A stretch of DNA of 64,000 bases. Origin: Oikopleura dioica. Lineage: Eukaryota > Animalia > Chordata. Location: the NCBI GenBank assembly GCA_907165135.1, contig OU015567.1, forward strand, positions 3,100,001 through 3,164,000, read 5' to 3'. This document shows, piece after piece, positions 18,641 to 61,500 of this stretch. How positions within the stretch are numbered: the stretch's first letter is position 1; every line of letters starts with the position of its first letter. Below the pieces are notes generated by a model. That model was not told the DNA's origin. It was given only the letters and a program-made list of their open reading frames with translations, and ran no database searches. Position numbers and translations under genes: made by a program.

Positions 18641-21461
18641 ATGGGTTTGAAAAAGATCTTTCTTCGTTACCACCCTCCGGGGATCACTCTTGAGTACACT
18701 AGGCAAGGAGAAGAGAAGAAAAAAGAGATAGATCTTTATGGTAATATTGAGGATTTTCGCCTTTAGTTAGCCTTTTGGATGTTTTTAGAACTCAGCCCAG
18801 ATGACTAGGGTTTTTCACGGGAACGGCGCGGTGCGCTCCGGGCCTTCCACCGCCAAAATCGAACTCTTATTTTTTATCAAAAATGAAAATTTAAAGTATC
18901 AAAAGTACTAATTAAAGGTCGCAGATTCCAAATATCGAATTTTTATTCTATATAAATGTCAAATTATGCCGAAAAATCACTTTTTGCACAAATTTTCTTA
19001 CTTTTCTCCCGGAGTACATCAAAATACACCTCTGATTTTGAGATATGATTGATAATAGACCTTTATCACTTATCTCTCAAAAATTCAGAATTCAGCAACA
19101 TTCAGCAGATACTCAAACTGAGGTAGAGTTCAAATTTAATTGCCTCAACTTACTTTTAATGTAGCTCCTCCAATTTAATCATTTACCCCATACAACCATA
19201 TATTTTTAGAATTCTTATGAGAAGATCTAATGCTTTAATATGGCCGATTTTCGACTTATATCGGATTTTTATCGGTTTCGGTGTTTTTACTCATCATATC
19301 CTGGTACAATCGGACCTTTTTTGGAAACATTTTAAAAAGTCTATCAGGACAACCTATGAACCCGCACACCTAAACTAACAGATGTCCTGCAATTTTCGGA
19401 CATTTTAGGGGGTCGGAACGTTTGGCCGAGCACCACATGATAGACTGAAATCCCGAAAATTTTACAGTCCGGGTAAAATATTAAAGCTTGAAGCGATGAA
19501 GGTGCTTAAAACTCATATTAGTTACTCAACTTTGCTGTTCATCGCCTAAAATAGCACTTTTTCTATGGTTTAAACTTTATTCAAAATTTGACAAAAATCC
19601 GATTATCTCGAAAAATTTCCGATATAAACCGGAAATCAGAAAATCGGCCGTATTAAAGCACTAGATCTCCTCGTGAGGATTCATAAAATATATGGTTGTA
19701 TGGGGTAAATATGTAAATTAGCGGAGCTACATGGAAAGTAAGTTGAGGCAATTAAATTTGAACTCCTCCTGAGGGTTAACTAATCGGAAGGGCCTGGGCG
19801 CGCGCTTATTTACAGAGCGCCCGGGGAGCAGTCCGAACCTTTTTGCTCAAGGTGACAAAATCAGGTGGTTCGATGCTGGAATCCGGGGATTTCCGATTTT
19901 GGTATTTTTGGAATCAGCGGGTCAAATTTAGTGTCCAGTGTGAATTTCAGAAACATAGCATAACTTTGAAATTCCCGTGAGAAACCCTACAGATGACGAT
20001 GCGGCAAGAATCGCGGAACAGATCATTGAAAACGAGAGACTTTTAAGTCCGAATAAAAAGAAAATGATCACAGACATGATCGAGAAGATACAGTCGAAGC
20101 TTAGCGAAGAAACAGATCATAAGTTCCATCTTGTCAGAAATATAAAAGTAAGCCCTTTATTCTCCGGATAATATGAATGATTTGCTATCTAGGCTCATCT
20201 TTTACCTATCACCAACGTCGCCTTCAACAAGTTAGCGTCCAAGTTCGCCACTGCCTCTTACGACCGGACATGCAAAATTTGGGACACTGAAACCGGCAAT
20301 CAGCTTCATTCATTAGAGGGCCATGATAACGTTGTTTATACAGTCGCATTTAATCTGCCATTTGGGGATAGGATAGCGACGGGGTCGTTCGATAAAAGCA
20401 TAAAAATTTGGTCGACAGAAGACGGACGATGCTTACAGACTCTTACAGGGCACGGAGGAGAGGTGGTCACGCTTCAATTTTCGCCGAAAGGTTAGTTCGC
20501 TTCCTGAGTCAGGAACTGGACTCGGTTACCTGTGCAGAAACTTGAGTACGGGTACAACCTTTTCAATCTACTGTAGAATTTTAGGCAGAGCCTTCAAGTT
20601 GTAGCTTTCATTTAAGGACCCTTACTGAGGTTGCTTAGCCCTGGCCAGGATTCTTGAGTGTAATTCTTATCGAAATTAAGGTAATTTCCTTGCTTCTGGA
20701 TCCATGGACACTACCGCTAGAATTTGGGATATCGAGACGGGCCAAGAAATCGCAAAAATGGACGATCACTGCGGCGAAATCATTTCAATATGCTTCAACT
20801 TTCAAGGAACACAAATTCTAACGTGCAGCTTTGATCAGACGCTAGGAGTTTGGTCGGCAAACAACGCGAGTCTGGGCAAGCGACAGCTCAAGTTGATAGG
20901 ACACACGGCGGAAGTGTCTGCCGGCAAGTTTAACTTCAAAGGCGATTTGATTCTCTCCGGCAGTATGGATGGGACGATGCGTTTATGGCATTCAAGTAAG
21001 AGCTTCTTCTTTTTGTCTATTTATTACATTTTTCCTAGTTTCCGGAAGTATTCTAGCAGTCTTTCAAGACTTTGAAGATGAGGTACTCGATGTAGCCTTT
21101 AATTTGGCAGGAACACTCGCTGCTGGATGCACTGTCAATGGAAAAATACGCTGCTTTGATGTCTGTACTAAGCGAGAAACTGGCAATTTCGACGATCACC
21201 CTGAAGACGAAATTTCAAGAATCGTCTTTAGCCCCAGTGGTAATCGTTTGCTGACTGCATCTGTTGATAATAACGCCAGGTATCGTACGCTATTTCGTTT
21301 CTTCTTCTCATTTTCCCCGTAGAATTTGGTGCGCCAAGACCGGGCGGCTTATTCAAACTTTGGAAGGACACACACAAGAAATTTTCAGCACCACCTTTTC
21401 GTACGACGGCAAAACTATCATCACCGCCAGTAAAGACAACACTTGCCGCATTTGGAGATAA
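18641..21461 (+). CDS. DAW1: Dynein assembly factor with WD repeats (WDR69/ODA16), interrupted by a hAT element in exon 2
   Basis: [19 protein letters not shown]; [13 protein letters not shown]; [11 protein letters not shown]; [26 protein letters not shown]; ends [11 protein letters not shown]. Confidence 0.9.
18806..19989. mobile_element. Non-autonomous hAT-type DNA transposon (1184 bp)
   Basis: TIR TAGGGTTTTTCACGGGAA / TTCCCGTGAGAAACCCTA (17/18 match). 8-bp TSD CAGATGAC at 18798-18805 and 19990-19997. No transposase ORF. Confidence 0.92.
19115..19775. mobile_element. Degenerate foldback/MITE nested in the DAW1 hAT element
   Basis: About 150-bp imperfect inverted arms (about 19115-19265 vs 19615-19775), e.g. 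gagttcaaatttaattgcctcaacttacttt and its reverse complement. Right end reads GAGGG-TTAA. Confidence 0.6.
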
Positions 21462-22197
21462 AAAAAATATTCGAAATAGAGCCAAAAACTACTCTATCTT
21501 CCAGCTTATTCTGAAACAATTCACCTGCGAACTACTGTACCTTTTATATTTTTTAGAACTAAAATATATATTTATTTTTTCATTTACCCAGTTAAGGCAA
21601 GAATTCTGTTTCCTGAGAGAATTCTTGAGATCGGAAAATAGGTAATTAGTAATTACATCTTCAATGGCATAAAATGCATGTATCAACCCTAAAAATCTAG
21701 GCCGGAAACTCACCTGCATCTTTATTAGGCCTTATAGATTCAAGTCGCTAACGAGCAAAAGCTATAAATTCTAGCAAAATTCAAGCAAGAAGTCAGACAA
21801 AAAGAGAGGAAATAATGAGCAATGTTTTTGAAAACTCGAAACTTGTCGTAGTAATCGATGTTGAAGAGATCGGCGAAGATTTCAATGAAAACAACACATG
21901 CGCTAATCCAGTTGAGTTTTGCCTCAGCTTCACCGTTTATCTGATACTTTTGATGTACATTCTTGTCATTCTGTCAGAGCAAGAGGGGATCAATGAGTAC
22001 TTCAGCCAAGTTTCTACTCTTTTCTAGTGAATCGAAATTTCTGAATTACTAAGACCATCAACTTTGCTAAATCCTTTTTCTTCTGATCTTGTTAAGCGTC
22101 ATTCATTGTTAATAAGCTTCACAACGCCATTATAACAACGCGTATCAGATGACAGAAAATCCATCTGGTGCTTCCATTCGAAAAAAGTAACCTGAAA

Positions 22198-22536
22198 ATG
22201 GCTCATAGAATAGAGATTCTTCCAAACTCGAGAACTGCACCATACTCCGAGGAGCAAAATCAGTACTCAGAACGCTTCCCTCTGCTCCGGACCAAAATCC
22301 ACCAGAACCCTTATCCGTACACAATTGAGCTTATTTTTCTGACCCTATTTAACCCATTCTTGTCTATCTACGGCTGGATCTCGAGCAGAAGAGTGAAAAA
22401 TGCCCTCCAAAACAACTCCAAATTCGAGGCGATTCAATTGAGCCTCAATCTTTATTTATATCTTGTCGCTTCTTTCTTGGCAACCGTTGCCTTTTACTCC
22501 TCAGCGATTGGGGTTGTTTTTCTGCTTTCGAAATGA
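22198..22536 (+). CDS. Possible CD225/dispanin (IFITM-like) membrane protein
   Basis: MAHRIE...IFLTLFNPFLSIYGWISSRRVKNALQNNSKFEAIQLSLNLYLYLVASFLATVAF: two hydrophobic segments flanking an S..V..AL.....A...S loop. Pattern match by eye only. Confidence 0.4.
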   Translation: MAHRIEILPNSRTAPYSEEQNQYSERFPLLRTKIHQNPYPYTIELIFLTLFNPFLSIYGWISSRRVKNALQNNSKFEAIQLSLNLYLYLVASFLATVAFYSSAIGVVFLLSK

Positions 22537-22939
22537 GAGAATAAAAATATTGAAATTTGACAAAAAAAGAGAACTTATCTAACCGTATTTGTGACCTTTG
22601 AGATTTCTGGAGTGCGTGATAGCAAGATACAAGTTCTAACCATGATCTTACAACTTTTGTTCTGAGCAAATAGCTCCATCTTTCCAAGTTTCCACCGAGC
22701 AAATAATTCTATCGTCTGATCTTTTATTTGCGTTTTTGTGAACTCGGCAACGACTAGACCATCAAGTTTACATTGCAAAAGCTGCAAATACAGTAACAGA
22801 CTATTATGCAATCAGATTCAATTTTTTTTTTCACTTTTTTATTTGAGGAATGAGTTTTTGCAGGGGGAATTAAGGAGGTTAGGAAGACAATAATTATTTA
22901 ATAATGTCCGGCGACGAAAATCTCGAGTCGCATAGTTCT

Positions 22940-24074
22940 TTACCAGTAGGGGACAGAGTGGAGGATGGCCTGCTCGGTCATCTCGGCCTTGGAAAGCGTA
23001 TCGACGTTCTTGTCCAAGTCGGATCCAACCCAGGTCTAGAAAATGACTGAATACGTGAGGAGGAGCTTAATTCTTACGTCGAGGATTGGGGTGATGAGCT
23101 CTCGGTTCTTGTCGGAAGAGAACTCGTCCCAGATGTTGTTGAGGCCAAGGTGCATATCGTGGTTTTCTTGACCCTCAAGTCGACCTGAAGAAAAATTAAT
23201 CATCACAAAAAGTGTTATTCATTGTACCATTTCCGTCAGCATCGTAGATATCGACAAGGGTGGAGCCGACGGTGGAGAAGAATCCGGCGAAACCGCGCTT
23301 GAACTCGTCAAAGTTCAATTGTCCATCGCCATCTTGATCGAGCTGATGGAACTGGCTGGCAGCGTATCGACCCATGAGGTTGAAGCTGGGGTTCTTGTCA
23401 AAAGTAGCGGCGGTGACTTTCTTGCCACACTCCCAGATGATGTCGAGATCGACGTGCGAGCCAGTGGTGCACATGTGGAAGGCGTCGTCCATCGCTTTGT
23501 CGAATTTGCCATCCCACCAGGGCTGTCGAATTCGGAGCGTTTACGTTTCTCCGCGATTTTCTTGCGGAAGATCCGCTGATTTTCTCCGTTTTTCCGCGCT
23601 TTTCTCCGATCCTCCGATCGTCCGATTTTCTCCGTCGCGCGGAGCTTCCGCGATTACCCGCTACCCTTTTTCTCTACCCAATCAGAAGAGCGGAACACCC
23701 TTTAATTTCGTCTTTTGAGCAAAAATTTCGGCGGATCATCCGCGATTCTCCGCTCCCTTTTCTCCGCCGCAAACCGGCGGACTTTCCGCGCGGAAAACGG
23801 TGGATCTTCCGTGAAAATGGCTGCGGATTCTCCGCTTAAAAATAGCGGAGAAAAGCAAACGCTCCGAATTCGACAGCCCTGCATCCCACTAGAAAGTTTA
23901 CTTTAACCCGAACGAACAAATTGTTCTCTCTCTTACCGATTTAAGGATGCTGTCAGCATTTTGGGAAATCGCACCAGCATTGCTCCAGAAGTGAGAGTCT
24001 GCTGCGACGAGGTCTCCAGCGATGCCGGAGTTAGCAGCAGAGGCGGTGGCGAGGATGGCAGCGGTAAACTTCAT
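22940..24074 (-). CDS. Secreted EF-hand Ca-binding protein, paralogue A (MITE at the exon 2 boundary)
   Basis: Signal peptide MKFTAAILATASA; EF loops DQDGDGQLNFDE and DADGNGRLEGQE; degenerate DLDKNVDTLSKAE; ends HSVPYW*. Four exons. Confidence 0.8.
23518..23881. mobile_element. hAT-type MITE (364 bp)
   Basis: Perfect 25-bp TIR CAGGGCTGTCGAATTCGGAGCGTTT; 8-bp TSD CATCCCAC at 23510-23517 and 23882-23889; interior rich in TCCG/CGGA. Absent from paralogue B. Confidence 0.95.
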
Positions 24075-24519
24075 TGTCAAAAAAGTTTTTTTGTTTGTTT
24101 GTCAACTGCTTGTTGATGAATAAATGCGAAAAAACGGTGATTTTTATATGGGAAAATCTCGCAGTAGAGAGTCGATTTGAGCGCCGATTAATGGCGCTAA
24201 AGTTAGGTTCAGCAGGGTTCGTAGGAAAAGTAGTTAATTGTTCTGATTTTAATGATAATGAAAAATGGCTCGCTTAGTTGCCTCTCTTGATTTTGATGAA
24301 TTCGAAAAACCTTACAATATTTTCCGCCGGAAAGTATGCGGTCTATTCAGCATAATATTTCTGATAAAAATAAGATTAATCGTTGAAATAATCGTTAAGC
24401 GTTTATTTTTATGAATATCAGCCGAATTGTAGGTAACATGTATGATGCTAAAGGATTTACAGGCAGAAATTTGGATAAATAATATCGTCAGGTATCGTAT
24501 CTTCCGTCTTTCATGAATT

Positions 24520-25310
24520 TTACCAGTAGGGGACGGAGTGAAGGATGGCTTGCTCGGTCATCTCAGCCTTTGAAAGAGTATCGACGTTCTTATCCAAATC
24601 AGATCCGACCCAGGTCTATAAAATTATTGATTCTCTGGTAAAGGCCTTAGTTCTTACGTCAAGGATGGGAGTGATGAGCTTTCGGTTCTTATCGGAGGAG
24701 AACTCGTCCCAGATGTTGTTCAGGCCAAAGTGCATGTCATGGTTTTCCTGACCCTCAAGGACACCTGAAAAGAAAATGCTTCAGGGCGATGTAAAAATGG
24801 GCGGCTCTTATCACCGGTCAAAAAGAAAAAAACTCACCGTTTCCATCGGCATCGAAAATGTCGACAAGAGTAGAGCCAACTGTAGAGAAGAAGCCGGCGA
24901 ATCCGCGTTTGAACTCTTCGAAGTTCAACTTTCCGTCGCCGTTTTGGTCGAGCTGGTGGAACTGGCTGGCAGCGTAGCGGCCCATAAGGTTGAAGTTGGG
25001 GTTCTTGTCGAAAGTTGCTTTGGTGACTTTCTTGCCACACTCCCAGATGATCTGTTGATCGGTGTAAGAACCGCTGGTGCACATGTGGAAGGCATCGTCC
25101 ATCTCTTTGTCGAATTTGCCGTTCCACTTAAAATCAATATAAAAACTATCTCTTTAGGATTTCTCTTACCGATCTGAGGATGGCATCAGCATTTGCTGTC
25201 AGTTTACCAGCGTTTTGCCAGAAGCTTCCGTCCGCAGCAATCAAATGAGCAGAAATATCGGCTGAAGTAGCAAAAGCAGAAGAAGCGAGCAAAGCTGAGG
25301 TGACCTTCAT
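24520..25310 (-). CDS. Secreted EF-hand Ca-binding protein, paralogue B (uninterrupted)
   Basis: MKVTSALLASSAFA; WNGKFDKEMDDAFHMC; DQNGDGKLNFEE, DADGNG; same four-exon structure and C-terminal VPYW* as paralogue A. Confidence 0.85.
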
Positions 25311-25985
25311 TTTCGACTTGTTTTTAAAAAGTGAGTTCGTAGCTGCTCTGGTGGCTTCATTTATGGCCAGTTTTGCCGGGCGCTAGAGGTCTATTGCTAG
25401 AATTTAAGCAAGTTGCAATTTGCAAGTGGAAGGTCCAAATCGGCGAAGGTTATTTGGGTTCGCTTCGAGAATCTTCGACCATCTTCTTTCAAGCCAGAGA
25501 TAGCAAACTTGCTTTTGCAAATAAAAACTCAGACATGGCGCAAGTCTGAGGATAGCGCTACTGAGTAGCCGAGAAAGCAGACTCTTGGCAAAAGACGAAA
25601 AAAATGAGAGAAAAATCACACAACAGGGTTTCGTTTTGGCCCTTGTTGACGATTTTCGCATTGGAAAAATGGCGATCGCCCAAATCATCAGTAAGGGTTC
25701 AAAATTAAGAAAAAAAAATCAGAAAGTTCAATTTATATTTTTAGACAATTAAGCTTCTTCTCTGATAAAGCAATACTTAATATCTAATTTATGGTCCCAA
25801 AAATATTCGTATCATTTTAATCTTTATCGGCTTCAATCATCGGTCACAGGTTTTTCTGAAGAAAAATGCTAGTCAAACAGTTCAATCGGGTTCGTAATTT
25901 TACTCGTTTGTGAAAGCGCCCGAGGACAACCGAGCCCCACAAATGGGGACTTTCCACAATTCGAATTCCTTTCCCTGTACAGTAG

Positions 25986-28900
25986 AAATTCTGGAGTTTG
26001 AACTCATCAAAAGTCCTCACAGTCCTGATCCCTTCAATCATTGGCCTTCTACTCGTAATCGCCCGTCAATCAGTTCCATCAAAAGAAAACCGGAACCTTG
26101 AGTTTCAGCCCTTTCGCCCAAACAACCTTTTTGCCCGACGATTCAAAGATGCCAACGACTTCGAAATTCTGTACACTCCGAAGACCGAGTTAACCGAAAA
26201 CATCATTCATTTGCTATCAAAAGATCTTGAGGAGAATCTGATGGAATACGACTGGTTCGGTAATCCTGTTCAAAACGGCACGACCTTCACCCCAGTTGAC
26301 TTTCCCGACGAGCAGTCTATGAGAGCGCATGTATCAGAAGTTGATACTGATCTTGCCAAGATATTTGTCGGCGTTTCCTTTGATTCCTTGGGAACTGATG
26401 GATTGGAATTTACGGTTCACACCATTCCAACTGGTAAGTTCGCATTTTCTCAACCTAGAAGAGCTTATGTAACCCCCATCCATAGCTGATGCAAGAGGAA
26501 TGCCAGTGAAAGGCCTGTGGAACGGCTGGCTCACTCAACGAAGCTCTCCCTCAGTACTCGGAAAATCCTTCGGAAACTCGCTGTTTTCTGAATCTGCTGA
26601 TGGCGCAAACCAAATTTACTACACTGAGGGATTCCTTGCTGTCCAATCTTCCATCAACCAGAACTATCTGAAGCTTACCACGGACATTCCACCCGAAAAC
26701 GTCGAATTTCTACAGCAAGAAAGCAGAACTGTCTCGAGCGATCGATTCCATGGAGTGATGCAGCAACAGCTTCCGCTCATGTTCCTCCTCTCCCTGGCCC
26801 ATTTCATGCAGCAGACCGTCCATTGCTTTTCTTCGCATCGGGAAAGTAACAGGCTCAAGTACTTGAAGATGCTCGGCATTTCAACACATACGATCATGGC
26901 GGCCTATTTTAGGATCAAAGTTTGAACTTTGTCTTTATTTATTGGCCATAAGCGGTAGTTACCTTCGCTGACCCTTGACGTGAACCATATGTAGTTTACT
27001 ATTGATGTAAAATTGCCACAACAATAACATAGCTTCTACGAGAAAAACCGGAGCATAATAATGCGTAACCAAAAATATGAAACTACTTCAACTTTGAAAA
27101 AGCGCAACGATCGTGATGTATGCACTCGCAACGGGGCTTCTGGCGACCATGCTTACTGCTGACATCAGCAAAAATGGAGCAGTACTTGAACACGTTGGAT
27201 TTTCAGCTGTCTTTGGGCTTCTTCTTTGCTACGGATGCTCAGTTCTCAGGAGAGGGACCAATTTTCGAATTGAATCGACTCAAGCTGAAAGTTCAAAATT
27301 CGAACCCTTGTCAGTTTATGTCAATTCATTTCGAAACTATTCAAGAATTCGGCGTCCGCTGCATCTGCTGCTTCTGCCATAATCTTTTTCCTCTCTATCC
27401 CGCATGGCTACATTTTTACGTCGTGGAAAGATATGCATATTCTGGTCAAGGAACCCGGTTGAACTTTGTCCTATAAGAAACGGTCTAGAGTCGTGGAATG
27501 CGCTGCTTATCAATCTGCGGTTGTAAGAACATGATTTCAGCAAAACGCCGGGCCCATGAGGGAATTTCGTAATTTTTAATGCTCGTTCGGGATCGTTTTT
27601 TTCAACCAGGGAAAAAGTCTCTTCTCGCCCTGAATCCGCCTGTTTTACTCGCTCTTGGTTGCGACATCATCTGCCACTTTGAAAAGCTTAATCTTCCCCT
27701 CTCCATCTTTCGAAATCTTACCCGCGAAGTTTCAAGGGATGACCCGATTGCGCTGACGGACATTTACAACTTACTTCTTTTGAATATGCTCTTCTACATG
27801 GCAATCACGTGGTTGGTCGACACGACCAAAGATGAACGAAATCGGGTTTTGTCGATGACGATCGAAAATCGCCGGGAGAAACAAAAATGCAGCTCCGAAT
27901 GGGGCTTCAAAGTCGAGAAAGTAACGAAGATTTTCGACGAGAAAGATGATCAGTGCGCGTTGAAAGATATTTCCTTCTCCACCCCATCTCGTGGTGTCAC
28001 AGCGCTGATTGGTACTAACGGAGCAGGAAAATCAACAACAATGAAGCTTCTCGCTGGTTTTTTGTCCCCAACTCGAGGAGAAGTCCACGACGCTGGTTTA
28101 GAAGTCGGCTATTGTCCTCAATACAACGTCACGTGGCCTGGACTGACTGTCAAAGAACACTTCATCTACTTCAACCAGCTTTCCAACGCCAAAGGAAAAG
28201 TCGAGCCAGAAGGAATCGCTGAAGATGTCCAGCTTAAAGAAAAACTCAACTCTAAGCCCGATGAGCTTTCCGGAGGAATGCTGAGAAAGCTCACTTTTGG
28301 AATTGCCATGTCTTCGAAGCCAAAGCGAATTTTGCTCGATGAGCCGACTTCTGGACTTGATCCGGTTTCGAGATTGGAGCTTTGGGAAATTGTGAAGAAT
28401 CTCGGACAGAACACAGGAGCGGATTTATTTTGAAAAAAAGCCCCCAAATTTGATAATTTAAGACCTAATTTCAGCAAAGATAAAGCACTTGCTGATAAGC
28501 AAATAAAATCCGACTTAGCGGTTTTGCTGACGACCCACTACATGGACGAAGTTGATGAACTCGCCAAAGAGGTCATTATCCTAAAACAAGGCCAAGGAAA
28601 TGGTCAGTCTTTTTTCTCTCAAAGACGTCGCAATAAAAAGATTAATCATAAATATCCCACCGGGGCATTACTTTCTCAAAGCGCGGACTGAGCTCACCTT
28701 CTGACACGCGCTATAGTAAAAATGATTCAATTAATTAAAGCTGACCAAATTGAAAGTCATAAACAAGGGTAGGTATCAAGATGTCAGCTGCTCATTTGGG
28801 CGGATCACAAGTTTCTCTTTCGACAAGGCAACGGGTTATAATTATTACCGGGCAATAAATCAGATAATTTAATCTTCTCAGCGTTTATTCTTGATCAAGG

Positions 28901-31825: not shown

Positions 31826-31974
31826 TAAATTTCTTGTCTTTTTTATCAAATCGTCATTTTCTTGTCGCTCTCTTTTCTTTATGTTTGCTTTATCGAAAAG
31901 GCGCGAACTCGTTTTTCCCCTTTCTTCGTAAATCTGCTCTTTTCTCTTCAAAAAAGAGAGAGAAAGACGAGAAA

Positions 31975-35024: not shown

Positions 35025-35073
35025 ACATTTATTTCTGGAAATATATAAAAATCCCAGTCATTATTGAAGGAAA

Positions 35074-43234: not shown

Positions 43235-43372
43235 AATTCAACTTTTCTACTGCCATTAAAATTCAAGACAAAACGTTTTTTCATTTTTGATTTTTATTAC
43301 AATGATAGATTGATACTTTTACTTGGCAAAAGAACAGTAATTATAAGATACCTACAGACATCGCAATCTCTT

Positions 43373-46002: not shown

Positions 46003-46739
46003 TTTTCTCTTTTGTAATTGCGCTTCATTTTATATCATCTCCCGACTCTGCATTCTAGAAAAAAAAATCATCGTTATTTGCGAAAATTTATTAGATAGAG
46101 AATGTCATTCCTAGACCACTGTAAAGTTGTTGCCCTGCTTTTTTATATAAAGTGGATATTTTTTATCAAGTATTGACGTTCTTAACACTTGACTTTCTCT
46201 CTGTGCCTCTCAGACTCAGTTCTCTTTCTTTTGTCTAGCTGTTTGTACTTAGCCAGGGCCCAAGGCTGCTGGATTCAGTATTGATCCCTTTTGAACTTGA
46301 CCTTTGTCCTAATTTGAGACTGGAGCAAATTGAAAGCCTTAAACCTAATTAAGATTCGTCAGCATCTCTTGTCATATTCCCAAAATCAGAGCGCCAAATG
46401 GAAAGCATCAATTTTAACAACTTCTCTCTCTTATGTCCTTCGTAAGGAGCTTAACTTCATCAATAAAAAAGAAGGATAAGGACAAGTTCATTCAATTCCT
46501 CTCTCAAGTTTTCAACCTACCTGCCATAGAATGCTCTGGAGGAAAAAAAAAAGCGCCAGGGGCACTTTAATCAAATTGCGAATAACGACAGCCTTTGAGG
46601 GATCAACCACTTCCTTTTGTCCCTTCGATTCAAGGATTTGCGTTTGAGAATTCTTTTCTTTTTAAAAATTTATGTAGGAGACGAAATAGGAATTAGGAGT
46701 CGATAGGAAAATCTAACATTTATTGACAGTTATTCTTAT

Positions 46740-49700
46740 TTACAGCTGAATAAAATTTCCAATCGAAGCAGTTTTGTCTTTTTCCCGGTCAATGAGGATC
46801 TTGGTTTTAAAAATGTTATTTTAGCTTTTAAAAGTCTGTACCTTTATAGTGTCTGAAGCGATTCCATCAAAGATGTTCTTTTGGGTTCTTGTGTTTTGAG
46901 AAGGGTCTGGTGATTTGTTGATTTCAAGGAGGAAAACGTTGTTTTGTTTGTCGATCATGAAATCGGCGCCGAAGAACTCGAATGTGTTGGGTCTTTTTGG
47001 GCTTTGGAAGATCGAGGGGCGAGTCACCTGCTGATTGGGTTTGAAAGCCTTCCTGAGATACGAGTAATCCTCCAAGCTATCCCTCACCACCTCTCTTAGA
47101 ACATCCTTCATCGCTGGGAAAATCCTCTCTCGCCAAACATCCTCTCCTTCGTTTTTCTCCAAAAGCCAGGTGCGAAACGTCTCATTTGACCAAATACAAC
47201 TTGACGGGATAAACTCATGCGGTCCTTTTTGCGCGACCGATCTTAGCTTTGCCAAGCGCTGGCCGCTCATTTCCTCGAGCATCGACATTGACTGTTCTTC
47301 TTTGAGGAGTTCGATTTCGTGTTTGGTTCGTTTCAGGTTGCCGACTTGGATGGAGTGATTGGTAAGGTGAATGAATTCATCGAAATCGTCAAGAGAAAAG
47401 TGCTGTCCGGAAAATCTTAAGCATTTTTCTTTGCTTGGACAGCTGGATGACTCTTATTTACCTTAGATAACTTCCATCGTAGATATAGATATCTAGGTTT
47501 TCGTCTGTTCGATGCAGCATGAACCACTGCCGAATGTCAAATTTCCGCTTGTGGATCAACAAAGGTTTTTCGATGTATTTTTGAACCATGACCGGAAAGT
47601 ATTCTTTGTCAGCATTGTCCGAGATTATATTTTCAATGTGCTTGCAAGACAGTTTTTGGGTGAAATCAACGAAGACCTACCTTGAGAACTTCTGAGCATT
47701 GATTGGTGACTTTGATCCCTCGACCGCGTGACGACAAGCAGGGCTTTGTCAGAGGCTAAACAGCTCGTAATCAACGCAATTAAACAGTGTTTAAACTAGT
47801 TCCGAACTTGCTCTGAATTTATAGCTGATATGAACTCCTTCCTTGACGATCCAAATATTTTCCTCTTCACAACTTTCTGAAGTCACATGTTTTTGAATCT
47901 CCTCGAGGTCGCCTTCAAGAAAATGATTATGTAATCGGGTCTTATTCGATTCAACCTGTCGAAATTTTGATGATCTTTCCGGTATATCGAGCATTGAGGA
48001 AGAATTTTTCGAGCTTTTTCCACTTTTTCGAGTCGGCATTGAAATTATCAAGCTGCGAAAGGGCAAATTTGATTTGATCATGAGACCTTCAAACTGTTAG
48101 AAATCTTCTTTTCAAAACAAGAACCTGTAGTTGATAGTGTAGTTCTCAGTTGTATAAAGCGCGAAGGATCTAAGCAGGCCCTTATAAACAGTTGTTTTGA
48201 CGTTTTTCATTTGATCATCAGTTGTGTCTTCGGCTAGAACAGTTTCTTTGAAATATGGTGCGGAGGCCCCATATCGTTTTTGGATCGTTTCGGTTAGGTT
48301 TTGCTTATGAACGAATGTTGTTCCTTCTTCGAAATGATTTATAATGGTCGAAGATGAAAAGTTGTCGTAAGAGACGAGACCTTTCGAAACATCAACTGTT
48401 GCGAAAAATGCGATTTTCGGGTCCTCTGATTTCAGTCGGGCATCTTTTGAAAGGATGAACAACTCATAAGTCAGGAATTTTTGAGTTCTTCGGGAGTTGT
48501 CTCAAAGAACCGATCTAAGACAGAAACCTCAAGCTGTCGCCACCCCTTTCCTAGTGCATCCGTTGCCTCATCTACCGCGTGTTCAGTCATAGCAAGACTG
48601 TAATACCTAGGGAAAATCACTAATAATTCGACTTTTTTCTGGGCTTAGTAGGGTGGGCATATAATACAGTTTTAGAAAGCCCAGGAGCTGGAGATCATTT
48701 TGACTATTGATAGTGGGGGGTGATTTCGTACCCTGAGGGCATTTAGGTACCTCTGAAGTCCCGAAATCTGGCCAATTTCGGAAATGGGGATTTTCGAAGC
48801 CCTAACTAAGCTTTTGAAGGGCTGCCTACTAGCCCAGATTGTAGCTCATGCTCTGGCGGTCATTTTGAGCCCAAAAAAACCTGGGAGGGGGGTGGGTCTG
48901 GGGGGAGCTAGAGGCTCTTGAAGTTTGGGAACTAGTCAGGAATCGAGCACTTTTTCCCAAAAAGTTCATGATCTGTGTTACAAATGCCTTACAAAGACTA
49001 TTTATAGATGTTTATTCATTTAAAAATGTTATAGATGTCATTTGGGGTCATCTTATCGGAGTTTTCTGAATTTCTCATAATCCTTGACCAAAAGTGACCT
49101 CAGATGACCCCAAATGACATCATTAACATTTTTAATGAATAAACATCTATAAATAGTCTTTGTAAGGCATTTGTAACACAGATCATGAACTTTTTGGGAA
49201 AAAGTGCTCGATTCCTGACTAGTTCCCAAACTTCAAGAGCCTCTAGCTCCCCCCAGACCCACCCCCCTCCCAGGTTTTTTTGGGCTCAAAATGACCGCCA
49301 GAGCATGAGCTACAATCTGGGCTAGTAGGCAGCCCTTCAAAAGCTTAGTTAGGGCTTCGAAAATCCCCATTTCCGAAATTGGCCAGATTTCGGGACTTCA
49401 GAGGTACCTAAATGCCCTCAGGGTACGAAATCACCCCCCACTATCAATAGTCAAAATGATCTCCAGCTCCTGGGCTTTCTAAAACTGTATTATATGCCCA
49501 CCCTACTAAGCCCAGAAAAAAGTCGAATTATTAGTGATTTCCCCTAGTAATACCCCCTTTCTCGCCGAGAAATGTAGCTTTTCTTGGAGGCTTTCCGCTT
49601 TCGTGTGGCAGCTTTGTCGATCCATCCTCGTGATTCAAGCTCTTTTTCAAAAGGAAGACGACAGGTCCGTCGGTCGAAGATTTCGTTCTTATCTAGAGCA

Positions 49701-50100
49701 TTTTCCAATCTTCTGTAGTACCCTTGTTCAGTGTTGCCTTACAAAAAGCTCAGAAAAAGAAAGGATAAAGATAATAAGGTTATTCTTATAGACATTTTGA
49801 ACTTTGGCCTTTGACCTTCGAAGTAATCGCATCCTGAAAGAACGAGGCTCTAGAACTGATCCCAGGTGACTTCGAAGCCGAATTTCTCAGTGAATTGGAT
49901 CTCCTCAGCTTCACTGAGTTCTCTCCATTCTTTTCAAATTCGACACTTCTGCTCAAGTCGAGTTTCCCGACACACCGGCCAACTGACGGTGTTCTTCGGC
50001 GCATCAGCTTGGTGCTGCCAGGATTGCTTTGGCGCTCGAACTCTTCATAGCGCTGCTCGATTTTTTCTTCGAAAATTTTGTCGTAAAAGCTTGCCAAGCC
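46740..50100 (-). CDS. Tubulin monoglycylase-like TTLL3/TTLL8 (5' end uncertain, about 49740-50230)
   Basis: LESRGWIDK; WIVK|P..SRGRGI; [11 protein letters not shown]; KFDIRQW; HLTNHSIQ; FEFFGADF; LLEINKSP; final exon [19 protein letters not shown]. Confidence 0.85.
48608..49546. mobile_element. Foldback hAT-type element (939 bp), about 445-bp near-perfect inverted arms
   Basis: Ends TAGGGAAAATCAC / GTGATTTCCCCTA; arms 48608-49053 and 49102-49546 with a 48-bp spacer; 8-bp TSD GTAATACC at 48600-48607 and 49547-49554. Confidence 0.97.
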
Positions 50101-50805
50101 ATCTGAAATGCATTTCTTATACTAGTATGAACTTCTCAAACTTACTGATAAGTGAAGATTTTTCCTTGTCCTTTTTCTTCCCTCCGACAAATTTTTTGAA
50201 TCTCTCGAAAGAAGAACTCGTCACATTCATTTTTTTCGAACTTTTATGAAAGAGCTCTTTCTGATCGAGAAAAGTGCTAGCGACGTGGATTCAAAAGGGG
50301 TGTTTCTTGACTTGCGAGCTCTAACCTTTTAAGAGTTATTGCTGACTAGATGTTGCCACAACCTGCGGCTAAAGAAAGGTGGGACCACCAGGCTTAGCGA
50401 AGAAATATGGGCTACTCTTGTTAATTTTTCCTGCAGAAGATTTAGCTTGTCAATATTTTCAAAACTCTATTTTCAAGAAAAGGGCACATTTTGGAAATCA
50501 TCAACAAATTTATTCAAAAAATGTGACATCAGTTAATACAGTCAGGCAACACGTAAAAAGACGCTTTTCCGCCCTACCAAGTAGAATTGTGCACTTCATA
50601 TGTCAAGTCATTCTTCTCCTTTCATTGTTGGTACTGGGGACTGTTGTTTTTTTTTGACTGCATCATGATTGATGAGCCGTTTATGCGGGATTAAATACGA
50701 GATAAGGAAAACTACAAACTACGAAAAGATAAAGAAAAGGGGGCTGAATCGTTGTCATAAGAATTGCGTTTTGTCCGGTATCCAAAGTTGTAGAAGATGA
50801 CTCAT

Positions 50806-53153
50806 TTAAAACACCATAGCAAGGAGGACAGCATTGAGAGCAAAGAAAATCTGCGCAACTGAAGCTCCAGAATCAGTGGGAGTCTCTCCGGTGGGAGCTG
50901 CGGCGACAGCCTCAGTAAGATCATCAGAAGAAACACCAGCCGCTTTGTTGCATGATCCAGAGCTGCAGTACTCAGTGCTGGAGTAGACGTTGTTGAAGCC
51001 AGGCACGAGAGCGGATGCACCAGCGCGCTCACCCTTGTGGCAATCTCGCTTCATGTTGTAGACAGCTTCTCCATTGACAGTGTAGGAAGATTGGGTGGTG
51101 ACACAAGAGGTGTAAGATAGATCTGGGCAGTTCTCGGCCTTTTCTGTAGACAAAACGGTGTAGCATTTGTCTTCTTTATTGGTGTTTCCGGGATCGGTTT
51201 CGCACTTGAAGCACTGCAGAAGTCGTGCTGTTTGAGTTTGAATCTCAAGGGTGGTCTCGTAGGCGGCGACGTTGCCATTGCAGAGAGTGCCATTAGAGTA
51301 GTCACAGACTCGGTTGGTAACTGCGACGCCATAGATATCCTCCGCAGCGGTGCTGCTGTCAATCATGAGTCCATCCTGATCACACCCTCGCTTGACGTAC
51401 CAGTTGTATTGTGTAGCGGGGAGCTTGCCATTCACAACGCTTTGCTTGTACTTGTAGGCAGAGACAAAGCATCTACCGGTGCAAGAGCCGGAAGTTCCAG
51501 TAGCGGTAGTGGATGAATCCTGAGTTGGTGTGAAAGTCTGCCAGCAGAGAGCGTTGTCTTTGTCCTTGACTGAATCGTAAGTTGGCTCACCGGCGTTGAC
51601 ACCGGAAATAGTTTCGGAAAAGCTGCTCTCGCAAGAGAAGCAATCGAAAATTTGAGCGGTGGACACGGTGGATGCTCGGCCAGTGTTACCATTAGCAGTG
51701 GTCGATCGCTGATTTTGCTGCTTGATGTCAGTCCATCCCTGTGGAACAACATAAGGATCGGCAATACGTTGCTCGCCATCGGTAACGCCATCATCGGGAT
51801 CAGGAGTGCATCCTCTTTTGGCAAAGTAAAAGTTTTCTGAGGCGTCTTCGCCAAGCTTGTACGCAGCACTGACAGATGAACAGCTCAAGGTTTTGCATCG
51901 GACGCGGCCAGTGGTTTTCGCATTTACGCAGTCGTTGGTATTATCAGTGTTACCAATTGGAGTGACGCATTGGAGACATTCAAGCTCATCAAAGATGCTG
52001 TTTGAATAAGAAGGAGCATCGGGCTTGCCAGATCCATCGGGAGAGCTAAACTGGACCGTAAGTGGTCGGATATCGTATTGAGTTGACGAAGTGGCGCTTC
52101 CACTTGTTAGCTGGAAAAAAGTTTGAGTAGAAACATCATTGTCCGGATACTTTGCATTATCTTTTGCTTTAGACGCAGAATTTGTGGCAGCGTAGAATCG
52201 AACATTCATCATTGCGTTGCTAATTGATCTTGTGTTACCGGTTAGAGCTTCACCGCTGTCTGTATTTGGCGTTGCGAGATCATCAGCGCCAACGCAGCCT
52301 CGCTCGATAACTATCCAATTTGAGGTTGTTACTCCTCTGGTATCCTTCGTTCCGTATTGGAAAGTCTTTGTGTAGCAAAGACCGGTTTCACTTGGAATAC
52401 AGTATTTTTCAGGATTAAGACTTGCACTTGAGTCAGTTGCGAAAGTGTTCGAGCCGGATGGATTCCAGCATGGCATCGTTACCTCAGAAGCCTGTCCAGG
52501 ATAGTTTGAAAATTCTTGAGAACCATGGCAGACAAGACAACGAGTTTCAGTCTGGACTTGAATGCTAGAAGTACTGACAGTAGGATCAGTAGCTTCGTCG
52601 TCAACAAAGTCATCTCGACCGTCCATTGCAAAGAATTGGGCTCCGTTTTCGTCAGTTCGGGCGGTGAACAAAACATTCTGACCCTTGTCAGATCCTGTCA
52701 GCTGGTACCCCTTGACACCGTCGTAGTGCTCGAGATCAACTCGGTTTCCATTGGCGATCTCTGACTCGGCGACCGTTCGACGAACACCATAGAAAACCTT
52801 GTTGTTCATGTCTTTTGCTTCAAACATGAAGAAAGTTGCGACACAATACTTCTCAACCTCATGTGAGTATCCGGGATAGCCATCGAGATTGGCAACAGGA
52901 GAAGCCTGAATATGTTACTCAAAACTTAAATATCAATCTTTAAACTTACGGTGTTTGCGTTGATACAAGGAATAGTACTCGAAGCATCAGCCAGCGCATC
53001 TCGGGCAGCATCTTCATTTGCGGCGACATTGATATACTCACAAACTAAGCAACCGTCGATACCTACGCCATTACCATCATCGAGTTGATAATGACCTTCA
53101 GTTTTTGAAAAAGCATAGGAAGAGCTTATTCCTAAAAGAGGAAGAAGCTTCAT
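50806..53153 (-). CDS. GPI-anchored protein with about 5 tandem Ly6/uPAR (three-finger)-like domains
   Basis: Exons 53153-52950 and 52905-50806. Signal MKLLPLLGISSSYA; repeated C..C ... C ... C ... [KE]RGC ... CN pattern (e.g. LQCFKC...KRDC...YCSSGSCN); C-terminal SGASVAQIFFALNAVLLAMVF*. Confidence 0.75.
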
Positions 53154-53718
53154 TTTGGCTGTTGTGCGATCAACTACGGAACTCGCTCGATTTTATACCG
53201 TCTCTGGTGGCCATGGTCACGAGCATGGAGACGGTTTCTAGCTGCAGTTTACTTTAACTGAAACGAGCAGATTCACGAACTTGAGCGCGTTCAATGCCAA
53301 AACTTTCATTGTTACTGTATCTAATTCTGCGAAAGACAAAGATCAACCGGCAAAGTGCAAGTTCTCCCAAGAAAAAAAATGCAATTTTGTTGTTGCGACG
53401 GAAGTCTATTATGTATTGAAGAAGATTCGAGAAAGTTTTGGTTGCAAGATTTTAAATATTTTAATTCTAATTTTAAAATTCATTGTAATAAGGTCATGGA
53501 GGTTCATACTAAAGCAAAAATCTGCCGGAACTTTCGGTTCGTAAGAATAAGTCCTCACAGCGCTCAAAAATCGATCTATCCCGGAAGATATTTGATACAT
53601 CCTTCAAAATGTGCCACTCTTCCAAATCGAGAGATGAGCTAAAACAAACAGAGAAAAATCAAAATAAAAATCTTTCTTTTCTCGATTTTGACATTTCATA
53701 AACGGTACTTTTTGGAAA

Positions 53719-55785
<2,067 letters not shown>

Positions 55786-56031
55786 GCCATCAACAACAAT
55801 TACCAATTTGACTGCCAAAGAAATAAACTTGACAAATGAAATGCAAAAACCTCTAGAATATGTTCAGCAAACAGAAACAGAAAACGAAAACTCGTTGAGT
55901 GGGCGTATCCCAAGGTCGTCCACACATATTTGTTCTGATTTATTTTTGCTCAAAGCAGATAATTCGACTTGACTGCCGGGCTTTGAGGAAAAAACGCAAG
56001 TTTATTGGCAAAATTTAACGGGAGAGAAACA

Positions 56032-57308
56032 ATGGAGAATCCATCTGTTGTCGTGAAAAAAGCAGAAGGAAAGGAATTTTCCTGCGACTTGGTTATTGAA
56101 GACCGGCCAGTGCCAGAAATTGACGACGGTAGATCTTCTTTTTCTGATTCTATTTCTTTAGTTTTTTTTAGATGATGTTTTGCTCGAAAAGGGATCGGTC
56201 GGAATTTGCGGCTCTGATGTTCATTACTGGACTCACGGTAGAATCGGCGATTTCATCGTCAACGAGCCCATGATTCTCGGTCACGAAGCTTCTGGAAAAG
56301 TAATCAAGGCCGGCAAGAATGTCAAAAATCTGCAAGTTGGCGATCGTGTCGCCATCGAACCTGGTTACAACTTGGAGGCGGACGACTATGCGAAGAAGGG
56401 AAGATATAATTTGTCAGATGTCTTTTTCTGCGCGACGCCTCCGGATGATGGATGCTTGATGAAGTATTACAAGCACAAGGCAAACTGGTGCTACAAGATT
56501 CCCGGTAAAAGAAATGACTCATGAATATTCCTTATTATTTTCGCTAGAAAACATGAGCTACGAAGAAGCTGCATTCATCGAACCCCTGTCTGTTGGCATT
56601 CATGCTTGTCGCCGGGCGAACATCACTCTTGGAGATACTGTGCTCATCACTGGCTGTGGACCTATCGGCCTTGTCTCTCTTCTCGTTGCTCGAGCGATGG
56701 GAGCTTCGAAGGTGCTTATGACGGATATGAACGGAGAGAGGTTGAAGAAAGCCATTGAATGCGGCGCCAGGTAAAATTGAGAAAGAAAGAGATTGTTTTT
56801 AGAAAAATTTCAGTGAAACGATTCAAGTGACAAGGGAGCAAACTCCCGAGCAAATCGCTGAAATTGTGGAAGAAAAGCTCGGCGGAAAACCAAATATTAC
56901 CATCGAATGCACTGGAGCTGAGTCTTGCATTCAGGTTTTAGAAAGAGGGAGATGAGTGTTTTCTGATTTCTTTAGACTGGAATTTACGCGACCAAATCAG
57001 GCGGATGTCTTTTGCTAGTTGGATTGGGCAAGGAAATGGCGAATCTTCCGATTGTCAATGCTGCTGTTCGAGAAGTTGATATCCGAGGGGTTTTTCGATA
57101 TTGCAATACCTGGCCTATTGCGATCAACATGATTTCCTCAGGTGCATTATTTTTTTCTTTGATATTCTTTTATTCATTTTTAGGGCAAATCCATGTCAAA
57201 CCGCTGGTAACCCATCGATTCGAACTGAAAGACGCACTCAAAGCCTTCGAAACAACTCGCCGAGGAGAAGGAGTGAAAGTTATGATCAAGTGTCTGCCAG
57301 ACATGTGA
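56032..57308 (+). CDS. SORD: Sorbitol dehydrogenase
   Basis: [52 protein letters not shown]. Lacks the structural-Zn Cys cluster, as vertebrate SORD does. Confidence 0.95.
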
Positions 57309-57879
57309 TTTCCTGATGTTCAACTGTTCAAGAATAGATTTCTTTTCGAGTATCGACAGCGGTTATTTGTATAAAAAAGAAGGCGTCTCATCGTCGCCTA
57401 TCGATCAGAACTCTATTATTCGGTTTCCTTTCGAAAACGAGCTACTTCCGGGAGTGGCGACTGCGGCTATTCTTCCGGTTTCGTGGCTACTGGCGACGAT
57501 TATCTTTTTGGCAGAGTTTTTTGCTCACTTCGGTTATTGAATTTCTTGAATAATTTATTGATACACTGTTTCCAATATCGTATTATCAAACTTGAACTAT
57601 ATTTTTTCGAGTTTCTTTAGGTGTTGAATAAAATTGACAAATCTCAAACCATTTTGTAGGCAGCAGCTTCAGCTGTCAGCACTGGCGCCGCTCTGGAAAT
57701 TCAAAAGGAAGCGATTATTTTAACATTTGCTAATGGCGCCTATTTGACGCCATAGCTGTGAATTCACTCATCTTTATCAATCAAGTTTATATCCAGCTTA
57801 TAACCAGTGATTCACGCAAATTTAATCGTCATCCAATAATTAAAAATCCAGAATTGGCGTCAATCTTTTTTCCTAGAAC

Positions 57880-58597
57880 CAGAGTTTGAAATGCTCGCAA
57901 ATGCTCGCGAGCGAAAAGAGCGAGAGCAAAAATTTATCATTGCTCTGAGAGCAGGGGAGCGGGAGCATGAAAATGAGTTGGCTCGAGAGCCAAAAGAGCA
58001 CGAGCCCGAATTTGAACCCGCTCGCGAGCGCAGAGAGCACGAGCGCATATGTCAGAAATGCTCGGGAGCTAGACGAGCGGGAGCGGCTGCTCTCGTGCTC
58101 GCCATGGAATTGACTCACGAGCGGCTCGCGAGCAAAATTAAAAGAATAATTTTTTCGCATAATTATTCACTTTCATAAATAAATTTCTTTGAGGATCTAT
58201 TTTTGGTGCTTTTAGTTTTATGTAAGCTTCATTAGGTCCGTAATCTCGGCAGCAGAATGCGAAAAGCCGAATGTAAACAGATAAAACATGCCCACCGCGA
58301 GGTGCTAACTCCTGTGACAGGGACTCATATGGAATTAGTCACGGGGCCGCCGAATCATTTGAGACCCTTGAAGGCTGCTCGCGAGTCAGTTTTTTCAGCT
58401 CGAGAGCCGATCGAGCGAGAGCACAATTCGACCAGTGCTCGAGAGCCAAGAGAGCGAGAGCGCGAAATGAAATGCGCTCGCGAGCGCAAAGAGCGCGAAC
58501 TCTGAAATAAATGTGCTCGGGAGCACAAAGAGCATCATGCTCGTGCTCGCTCGCTCTCAAGAGAGCCGCTCGCGAGTCACGAAAATTTCAAACTCTG
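57880..58597. mobile_element. hAT-type MITE (718 bp) with dense subterminal GAGC/GCTC arrays, intergenic
   Basis: TIR CAGAGTTTGAAAT / ATTTCAAACTCTG; 8-bp TSD CCTAGAAC at 57872-57879 and 58598-58605. Confidence 0.93.
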
Positions 58598-61500
58598 CCT
58601 AGAACCATGCTGGAAATCGCTCATTCAGCTTTGAAAACAAGTCTGGTAGGGGTGATGAGCTCAAAGAGAATAAATTATTAATCAAGTTGTCACGCTTCCC
58701 TTTAGTTAAAGCCAAGCAATGGTGTTTAAAAAATGACAGCTTCTAACTTTTTTCTCACCAAATGAAACACACTCAATTTTCGCTTCAACTGAAGAAGTCA
58801 GCCTTTTTTATGTTTTTGGAATGGGGAAAATACAAAAAAGGCGGCATCTTCCTTTAGAATTAGCGCCAAGGTCAGACAATATGGGTTTTTCGCACAATCT
58901 CGAGGGCATCTAAGTATTTGTATCCTCCTCGCTGATCAAGCCACTTGGCGCAGTTGGGCACACAAGTGGTCGCCAAATGTGTCCGCCAAGTATGCCCTTA
59001 GGTGAGAGTTGCTCCTTACTGTAACTCCTCTAGTTCAGAGCAAAGGTAGTAGTTTATAGTTTCTTTGCGCCAGGTTTCAGCAGGCGGAAGCGCGCATTTC
59101 CACCATCGGCACGGGCGTACAATGGATCAAAAGCGCCGCAGGCACGTGTCACTAGAAGGTGTCAAAAAGATAAATTTATTAAACCTGGCATTCGCGGGCA
59201 ATTTCTTTAGTTCCAAGCCAGTCGGAACAAATTACAGGTGGACGATGAAACTACAGGGAAAATGACTCGTTACGGGTCGTTCTCTTCCTTGATTTCAACT
59301 TTTCAAAAGGAAAAACGTAACTAGAAAAAGCAAGCTTCTAGTAAAAATAAACAAAAAAGTCTATTTATAGCAACCTTTCTTTGACAAATGATGCGTTAGA
59401 GTTATGATTAGTCTTATGAGCGTATATTAGTGACATCCCCTAATTATGGCTGACATCCGGTCGCGTAGAGTCTTTGCTGGTCAGCGGTATTTTTGAAAGA
59501 GCCGCTTGTCAAATTTGTTTCCGGAGAGGGCGCGTAATATACACACTTTATCGCCACTTGTTTAATTATAGCACTTGATTACTATTTTTGAACCGTAACA
59601 AGTCTGATTTTTCTGTGTATTTCGAGAAGCCTTCAGGCGCCGACCCGAAGCCCTGAACAAAGCCGATTCTAGCACGGGTCTGTCCGGCGCCGTCGTTTTT
59701 CCACTTTCGCCTTTTTGTGCTGACAAGTTTTTCGCCATCAATCTTCTTGTAGAGTTAGATCCTGGCCACTTCTGCGCGGCGAGATCAAACGAAAAGGATC
59801 ATCCGAGGCGACGAGCATCCTGGCCTTGTATATTTGCGCCCTCTGTTGTTCGGAAATTGAGCGATTATGGAGCCGCCTAGAAATACTGAAGAAAGCCATA
59901 AAAGTTCATTTGTGAATACAGTTTTCAACAATCAAGGGCGTGCACCAATCAAAAAGCTTCGATAAATGTCTCGTAGACAGTTTGTTGTGCAATGTTTTAA
60001 TGAAGCCCTATTCCTATCAAAAATCTTGGTTCATTTGGTTTGATATTATTTGAATTCAATGAAGAAGAACTTGAAGTTTCTAAAATACAAAAGAGCTCAT
60101 TATGAGGATTATCTAATGATGTGGCCTAAGCTTCCGGGAAGTGCCAATGTCGCAGACTCGTGGCGTCCCTGCTCAAAGGGCACCATTCTGCTCCACCGCC
60201 AATTAGAGGCGACGCGCGGGGCGCGATCCCTCTGATTAGAGTGTCGATTTATCTCACCAAAGCCTATTCAGGGCAAATGATCAGGCGCCGAAAAAACTCC
60301 ACCGCCGCGGCGCCGCAATGTCCTAGAAGAAGTCATGGTACATGCGCGGCGCACCATCGAAGTTGATTTCCGCCAACTCTGCTGAATTTTCTTAAAATAG
60401 CGGGGAAAATCGACTTTTAATGAAAGCGAGATTTTCGACCAGAAAATGTATTTTGCAGAAATGTCTCCCAAAACGGATTACCACCGATTTCCGGCTGATC
60501 CCTTTTTGGTCGATTACGCATATCTATTCTCTGGCTAAAAGCCCCTTTTCCGGAATAAATAATACACCCTCCTGTTGAGTGATAGATTCGCCACGCATCA
60601 GCGGATTGTAACAAATGGGCGAAAATATAAACTCGAAAAAGCCTATTTAGCAAACGGGAGGCTCCACGGAGCAGACCGGAAGGAAAGGGGAAGAATTCTG
60701 ACAAGTGGCACAGGTATTAAGACAAATTTCAAGAAGGAGAAGCGTAAAATCGGATTTTCTGGAATGGGCAAAATATGACAGTACAAACAAACAGTACAGG
60801 GGTTGAGAGTAAAAGTTGCACGAAAATTGGTTCACTGGCATAAAGGGGTTAAAAGTGAAGGGTTGAAGATCAGGGGTTCAAAAAAAGAAATGACAAAAAA
60901 CAGGTTAAAATGGATAAAATATGATTTTGAACAAGTATCAAAATACCCAGCCAAGTTGAAGTTTACACAATACACGATAAAAAACATAGTTTTATGATTA
61001 TGATTGGCAAAAGTCATTAGAGACGCGAAGTCGGTTCCGGGAGGAAACGAGACCTGGAAGTAAACGGGCTTCTTATCGGAAGCAGGAAAAAATAAAAGTC
61101 ACGACGCGCTCACACTCTCAAATTCGCGCGAGACTAGTGACACCGAAAATAATTACCGTCGTTCAAATTTGTCAAAGTCAAAATCTATCGAGGAAATCTT
61201 CCAACAAATTCAAGGGGGTCGTTTTAATGATCAAATAAGGGCGTCACCATGGCAAGTTTTTTATAAAACTCTTCTTGAAAAGCTGGTTTTAAAGATTTCA
61301 TTTTTTTTTGAAAATAAAAAGTGGGAATTCTAGTCGGATTCTGCCATTTTGAAATTCATCCCTCGCGTCCAAAGTGACATAAACTCACGTTTCGATGCCT
61401 GTGCGAGGTCCCCTGCATCAGGAAAATGCCATTTTCGCCGCCGCATTATCACCTGATATCCCGCCGCGCCGTCGTAAATCGGACACACCAGCGCGACGCC

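Follow-up and report, generated by a model that had tools for sequence, protein, structure and literature searches.

In animals, intron gain is seldom observed while it happens. In maize, the hAT elements Ds/Ac are said, from the work of Wessler and colleagues in the late 1980s to 1990s, to be spliced out of exons through donor and acceptor sites located in or near their termini, often with small in-frame changes and leaky alleles. The present analysis concerns four hAT-type elements, numbered E1 to E4, found in a stretch of 64,000 nucleotides from the chordate Oikopleura dioica (contig OU015567.1, positions 3,100,001 to 3,164,000, hereafter called the window). Three of them lie in coding exons. 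The closest described systems are the introners, transposons which carry one splice site and take the other from the target-site duplication, or TSD (Huff et al. 2016 Nature). They were reported in 5% of eukaryotes, and about 82% of those classified were terminal-inverted-repeat (TIR) transposons (Gozashti 2022 PNAS PMC9860276; Gozashti 2025 PNAS PMC12130899). The surveyed carriers include an Oikopleura sp. TARA metagenome-assembled genome, with 33 introners, and the tunicate Styela clava (PMC9860276; PMC12130899). For the appendicularian Fritillaria borealis, the review and follow-up that summarise the work describe the majority of introns as derived from MITEs (miniature inverted-repeat transposable elements) and excised by a modified U2 spliceosome (Henriet et al. 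2019 Curr Biol, reviewed in PMC11282704; follow-up PMC13326754). The same review presents this removal as neutralising transposon damage (PMC11282704).

The window very likely belongs to OKI2018_I69, the published assembly of the Okinawan O. dioica, in which 19 scaffolds total 64.3 Mbp, with one gene every 3.7 kb, a median exon of 152 bp, a median intron of 49 bp, and 11% of non-GT/AG introns. It was obtained, with its haplotypes merged, from one generation-47 male of a laboratory culture, the heterozygosity being 3.6% (PMC8008620). All four elements were flanked by perfect 8-bp TSDs. Both ends read TAGGG in E1 and E3, CAGGG in E2 and CAGAG in E4, and all conformed to the YARNG pattern of short TIRs. 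The initial annotation, made from the letters of the window, had proposed four elements with 8-bp TSDs and YAGRG-type termini, three of them exonic. These were recovered with slight corrections of their ends, E1, E2 and E3 in exons and E4 between genes. The absence of a common interior was confirmed, as BLASTN with a word size of 7 detected no similarity between the four families. In our preferred reading, to which we give a probability of roughly 45%, these are recent hAT insertions of unequal consequence, with E3 resembling an introner and the E1 and E2 alleles being most likely recent and damaging or hypomorphic. Five independent recent insertions of non-autonomous hAT-type transposons would have taken place, one of them nested inside E1, in an Okinawan O. 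dioica genome which still holds transposase-bearing hAT copies.

The best candidate for a new intron was E3, a 939-bp foldback element (48608..49546) bordered by the TSD GTAATACC. Its 419-nt arms are complementary at 417 positions out of 419, and E3 is probably young because the arms differ at just two positions. The host is a TTL-family gene of the TTLL3/8 type, recognised by a match to PF03133, whose exons around E3 cover positions 46821..49738 of the minus strand as delimited by this match and by the open reading frames (ORFs). The element sits in the middle of an exon, 78 nt upstream of the next donor, which precedes a 65-nt GT-AG intron placed from the shift in ORF frame. Its removal in silico leaves a 106-aa open frame in a poorly conserved linker region. 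Read in the sense of the gene, the upstream copy of the TSD is G|GTATTAC, and a G comes after the element terminus ...TTTTCCCTA. Because the TSD provides a GT (49553-49552) and the terminus plus this G provides a TAG, E3 together with one TSD copy could leave the transcript as an exact intron of 947 nt (48607..49553, minus strand). The acceptor AG (48608-48607) is composed of the last base of the element and the first base of the TSD, and is preceded by a tract with 71% of pyrimidines. Excision as a GT...AG intron would restore the reading frame exactly, with a 0-nt change. Such a scarless fit was obtained for about 2% of random exonic insertions. In the model that we favour, E3 would act like an introner, and the long hairpin would place its splice sites next to each other. 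We regard E3 as a good candidate for a newborn intron, of a kind already known.

The likeness to introners lies in the geometry of E3, a TIR element which, with its TSD, would leave the mRNA exactly. An element and a TSD giving together both splice sites were found for E3 only; E1 and E2 are not self-contained and differ from introners in being alternative-acceptor scenarios. Fritillaria offers a second parallel, with an appendicularian host and genic MITE insertions, and the neutralisation of transposon damage is the very idea put forward in the initial annotation. The Fritillaria introns, as far as the review describes them, mostly have AG-AC or AG-AT borders and are excised at the ends of the element, whereas a GT-AG intron (E3) or alternative YAG acceptors would be used here, and only about 11% of the O. 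dioica introns are non-GT/AG, unlike in Fritillaria. Introner families contain many demonstrably spliced copies, and the maize Ds/Ac cases come from a plant with experimental RNA evidence, whereas the window holds one scarless case, in an animal host and in families of 5 to about 25 full copies, known from sequence alone. The concept itself is established and already known from introners, from the Fritillaria MITE introns and from maize Ds.

Wild ENA metagenome contigs, with about 90-98% identity to the window, gave exact empty sites for both E1 and E2. At the E1 site, at least four wild contigs lacked the element, two of them aligned and the rest recognised from uninterrupted ORFs. In the contigs ERZ17293588 and ERZ27264819, whose alignments span the site, CAGATGAC is present once, and a word search with a piece of DAW1 exon 2 returned three wild-contig ORFs, two of which read ...ELSPDD... 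without interruption. The E2 site was empty in one aligned contig, found from the ORF fragment P0001 of the host gene, EF-hand gene A; it is about 97% identical to this gene and contains one GTGGGATG copy and no element. The E1 and E2 insertions are therefore derived and their duplications genuine. The differences between the window and the wild contigs were mostly synonymous (in EF-hand exon 2, 8 synonymous and 2 non-synonymous), so the host genes were under constraint until recently. The EF-hand contig (ERZ27290471 k119_699658) also showed, at about positions 47-49, an ACG opposite the ATG start codon that the gene has in the window (24072-24074), which may be a different start, a variant or an error.

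DAW1 was recognised as the host of E1, the next exon being collinear with residues 90-188 in 5nnz and 5mzh, two DAW1 chains of solved structure. Exon 1 (M...IDLY plus 1 nt) extends from 18641 to 18740 on the plus strand and ends at the donor GT 18741-18742, as placed by translation and by alignment of a wild contig. Exon 2 begins at 18789 after the acceptor tttttAG (AG 18787-18788), and E1 (18806..19989, 1184 bp) is inserted 17 nt downstream, between two copies of the TSD CAGATGAC (left 18798-18805, right 19990-19997) of which wild contigs have one. The native acceptor and the first 9 nt of the exon (AACTCAGCC, encoding (E)LS(P)) occupy positions 18787..18797. Normal use of this intact acceptor would lead to a TAG stop at the first codon of the element. 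The alternative path proposed in the initial annotation would use a cryptic acceptor CAG (19990-19992) in the downstream TSD copy, 1.2 kb further on, and continue into the rest of exon 2 (19990..20147, donor at 20148) with a loss of four residues. The pyrimidine tract of this cryptic acceptor reaches 43%, compared to 71% for the native one. ELSP, the residues that would be lost, corresponds to DLGP and DLTP in the alignment with two solved DAW1 chains, each motif coming from one entry.

E1 had been presented as one element. Its location and TSD were upheld, but it proved to be composite, with an element of about 533 bp (TIR TAGGGTTT[T/C]TCACGGGAA) interrupted by a fifth element of about 645 bp, approximately at 19124..19768, which has a TAGAG terminus and inverted repeats of 135-158 nt. 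The relatives of E1 in the genome measure about 533 bp, are 97% identical and are devoid of this nested insert. Relatives of the nested element were seen as inverted-repeat pairs 3.4-4.3 kb apart (C2:3931822-3935382 and C4:7864226-7868676), which suggests that its parent may be a larger element. Its candidate TSD is ambiguous, the motif CTGAGG being repeated. Upstream of E1, a short ATG-initiated frame of 4 codons (ATGAAATGGGTTTGA, 18630-18643) overlaps the main DAW1 start; its ATG directly follows a tttcag, a possible trans-splice acceptor.

E2 is a 364-bp hAT MITE (23518..23881) flanked by the TSD CATCCCAC (23510-23517 and 23882-23889), with 25 perfectly matching terminal nucleotides (CAGGGCTGTCGAATTCGGAGCGTTT). 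It interrupts exon 2 of EF-hand gene A, a secreted-looking gene of the minus strand identified by the Pfam EF-hand domain, whose exon 1 (23937..24074, 46 codons) encodes a signal-peptide-like N-terminus. The element lies 7 nt past the acceptor ctttctAG of exon 2, a position supported by the intron position in paralogue B and by the wild contig. In the sense of the gene, the native acceptor AG (23890-23889) and the 7 exonic nucleotides TGGGATG precede the element (23882..23890). From this acceptor, the frame runs through E2 and meets a stop after about 52 codons. The proposed rescue would use a CAG five bases inside the distal terminus (AG 23524-23523), 0.37 kb beyond the native acceptor, followed by CCCTG, by the TSD copy and by the remainder of exon 2 (23229..23524), and would add two residues (Pro-Trp). 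The element and its duplication total 372 nt, which is divisible by three, and retention alone would keep the frame. In the reading that we prefer, both E1 and E2 meet a premature stop by normal use of their intact native acceptors, and their in-frame distal acceptors, being weak, would be at best minor routes. Two EF-hand paralogues stand in tandem on the minus strand (22940-24074 and 24530-25310), with four exons, about 210 aa and identical intron positions; only copy A has a transposon. An exact look-up of the 98-aa EF-hand ORF of the window returned no match.

The initial annotation had tentatively drawn from these paths a general route of tolerance by splicing, through hAT termini (…CCCTA, …CAGCCCTG) and a permissive spliceosome. 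As a rule for O. dioica, exonic insertions would routinely be brought back into frame, and all three alleles would be functional; this would constitute a standing route to intron gain and to small protein variants. Its arithmetic, derived from the sequence, was right (a change of 0 aa for E3, -4 aa for E1 and +2 aa for E2). Random insertions were simulated in the long ORFs of the window (20,000 per element), E3-type paths being defined by a GT within -8..+5 and an AG within ±5, in frame and without a stop. Paths of the proposed types arose by chance with frequencies of 0.157 for E1 (alternative acceptor), 0.394 for E2, which always has a CAG at -5, and 0.087 for E3. The joint chance for the three window cases out of three is about 0.005, a figure which speaks for the rule and which uses criteria drawn post hoc from these same three cases. 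The 11% of non-GT/AG introns in O. dioica (PMC8008620) and the splicing of MITE-derived introns reported for Fritillaria borealis (Henriet 2019, in the account given by PMC11282704) point in the same direction. Against the rule, the paths are predictions made from sequence; E1 and E2 each leave an intact and stronger native acceptor between the branch region and the element; and the E1 path would sacrifice ELSP, a conserved DAW1 motif.

Outside the window, the comparison with random insertion that had been suggested as a check gave no support to the rule. Six further E1/E2-family copies with reconstructed empty sites in long ORFs, one certainly exonic and five probable or possible, yielded an in-frame path in 0/6 cases under the strict definition and 2/6 under the loose one, for a loose chance expectation of 0.26-0.36. 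Over the simulations as a whole, the rates were about 0.09-0.12 (strict) and 0.2-0.36 (loose). The certain case was an E1-family copy of 533 bp (G000:C1:15789309-15789841, L004 1501-2033, TSD TTCATATA) in a gene of the minus strand. It splits the exon of a ubiquitin hydrolase which encodes the catalytic Cys box (GLTNLGNTCYMN|AIIQ), and lies 13 nt before the exon donor; the following exons encode more of the UCH domain. No AG is present near its distal end, and the sole in-frame canonical path would start at a GT inside the TIR and remove AIIQ. The exonic status of the copies at L032, L033, L039, L042 and L005 was judged from ORF length and a modest codon bias only. A Pfam search with ten half-ORFs flanking other family copies gave no match, and the codon-usage score trained on the long ORFs of the window was too weak to call exons, the true DAW1 exon itself scoring -2.4. 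A more permissive enumeration, with wide windows and G[TCAG] donors, was discarded as evidence, an in-frame path being returned for nearly every insertion. Because such a search succeeds for nearly all insertions, a rescue on paper is weak evidence.

Three of the four best-supported exonic cases (E1, E2 and the ubiquitin hydrolase copy) lie within 17 nt of a splice site, compared to about 22% expected for a median exon of 152 bp. This proximity favours the rule, as does the lack of depletion of exonic copies. Both observations fit tolerance, and would equally fit extreme youth in a small laboratory population. With the out-of-sample rate at chance, the general rule of in-frame rescue is not established and we consider it unlikely. 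The hAT-type nature of the elements, the derived state of the E1 and E2 insertions and the exact intron geometry of E3 are the parts of the proposed tolerance by splicing that stand.

The same data may be read in the opposite way, the three exonic insertions being recent loss-of-function alleles, heterozygous or drifted up in the small laboratory culture, with coincidental in-frame paths. As a single heterozygous male from the laboratory provided the assembly, damaging alleles that have yet to be purged are a serious alternative; as an account of all three insertions they seem rather unlikely. The wild contigs at the E1 and E2 sites were all empty; if the window is part of the published assembly, it represents one haplotype of a generation-47 male with 3.6% heterozygosity; the families are young, with 97-99.5% identity within subfamilies; and with loose settings an in-frame path of some sort turns up for almost every insertion. 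This explanation has to accommodate the scarless GT-AG fit of E3, shared by only about 2% of random exonic insertions, and a joint chance which stays low even when the post hoc choice is allowed for. Homozygous null alleles should also be costly, as cilia and sperm probably depend on DAW1 and on the tubulin-modifying ligase.

Several points weigh against our preferred combination of an introner-like E3 with damaging E1 and E2. About 8 of the 20 examined copies lie in ORF-like sequence, showing no depletion relative to a genome of which roughly one-third is coding. The splicing of E3 is itself inferred, like everything that concerns splicing here, and rescue of E1 and E2, unproven, might still occur. 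No empty site was found for E3 by protein word searches with the flanking ORFs or by a scan of JGI metagenomes with the adjoining 64-aa piece. The searches made with exon pieces matched genomic ORF fragments only.

Should E3-type insertions be spliced, O. dioica would offer a chordate, kept in the laboratory, in which filled and empty alleles segregate; with its short life cycle and the public RNA-seq of the published Okinawan strain, the cost, the efficiency and the fate of newborn introns would become directly measurable. A broader proposal is that introns are now actively being born in the Okinawan O. dioica, several unrelated hAT-type families entering exons more or less at random and being neutralised by splicing, which may give exact new introns or shifted acceptors. 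We hold this to be somewhat doubtful; if true, intron gain and small protein variation could be watched live in a culturable animal with a 4-day generation. If the elements are not spliced, the window would be the record of a hAT burst damaging genes of a laboratory line, of relevance to users of the gene models of this assembly.

E4, the intergenic element, measures 718 bp (57880..58597) and is located about 570 nt past the stop of a dehydrogenase gene, with the TSD CCTAGAAC (57872-57879 and 58598-58605) and the TIR CAGAGTTTGAAAT. Copies of the four families were searched in the 64,281,565-base assembly (19 contigs), and the numbers obtained are lower bounds: about 5 for E1, about 12 for E2, at least 20 full-length for E3 and about 25 full copies for E4. 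Measured against MITEs, which are small, non-coding, homogeneous and of high copy number, the elements have sizes of 364-939 bp and, as lower bounds, low copy numbers. The E3 relatives were 76-89% identical, the E4 copies 91-98%, and the E2 subfamilies 98-99.5%. Among other copies, 8-bp TSDs were seen in 12 of 13 for the E2 family, in 4 of 5 for the E1 family, and in the one extra copy each that was read for E3 and E4. These dispersed copies with their own TSDs bear on a last explanation, in which the insertions would be chimeric joins or mis-polished long-read sequence in an assembly that, as published, is Nanopore-based with merged haplotypes. Given the perfect 8-bp duplications at the four sites and the intact TIRs as well, such an artefact is very improbable.

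The possible sources of transposase were searched with the hAT dimerisation domain (PF05699), which gave ten matches in the genome. Seven of the ten correspond to a hAT element of about 6 kb with 8-bp TSDs and a TIR starting with CAGGGTGTC / CAGGGTGTCAAATCGCGG, in which the domain stands at the end of a multi-exon-looking gene, a complete or partial transposase. A 1580-bp member of the E2 family (C3:1858915-1860494, TSD TAGTAGAC) also retains the domain (28 bits), and because this match is inside the element the E2 family is tied directly to hAT. In addition, the E2 TIR resembles that of the 6-kb element over the first 9-13 bases. The search for transposases with matching TIRs, which the initial annotation had suggested, led for E2 to this domain remnant and this partial TIR likeness; the transposase loci examined showed no TIR matching E1, E3 or E4, and these three are putative hAT elements, assigned from TSD length and terminal motif only. 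No convincing coding capacity was seen in the elements, the genome-wide search being limited to PF05699 and the short ORFs of E3 and E4 being unscanned.

Copies of the 6-kb element are found at L063 3493-9565 (G000:C5, about 13.844-13.850 Mb), at L064 2494-8431, and at C1:636914, 641782, 732634 and 737494 and C4:393172. Those compared are 88-98% identical and contain internal tandem repeats. A second E2-family element, of 820 bp (C3:1855680-1856499, L042), has the same TSD TAGTAGAC as the 1580-bp one (L043). A single insertion seems to have been duplicated locally, its two copies then losing different internal parts. C3, which carries both, measures 2.9 Mb and may be the Y-specific scaffold.

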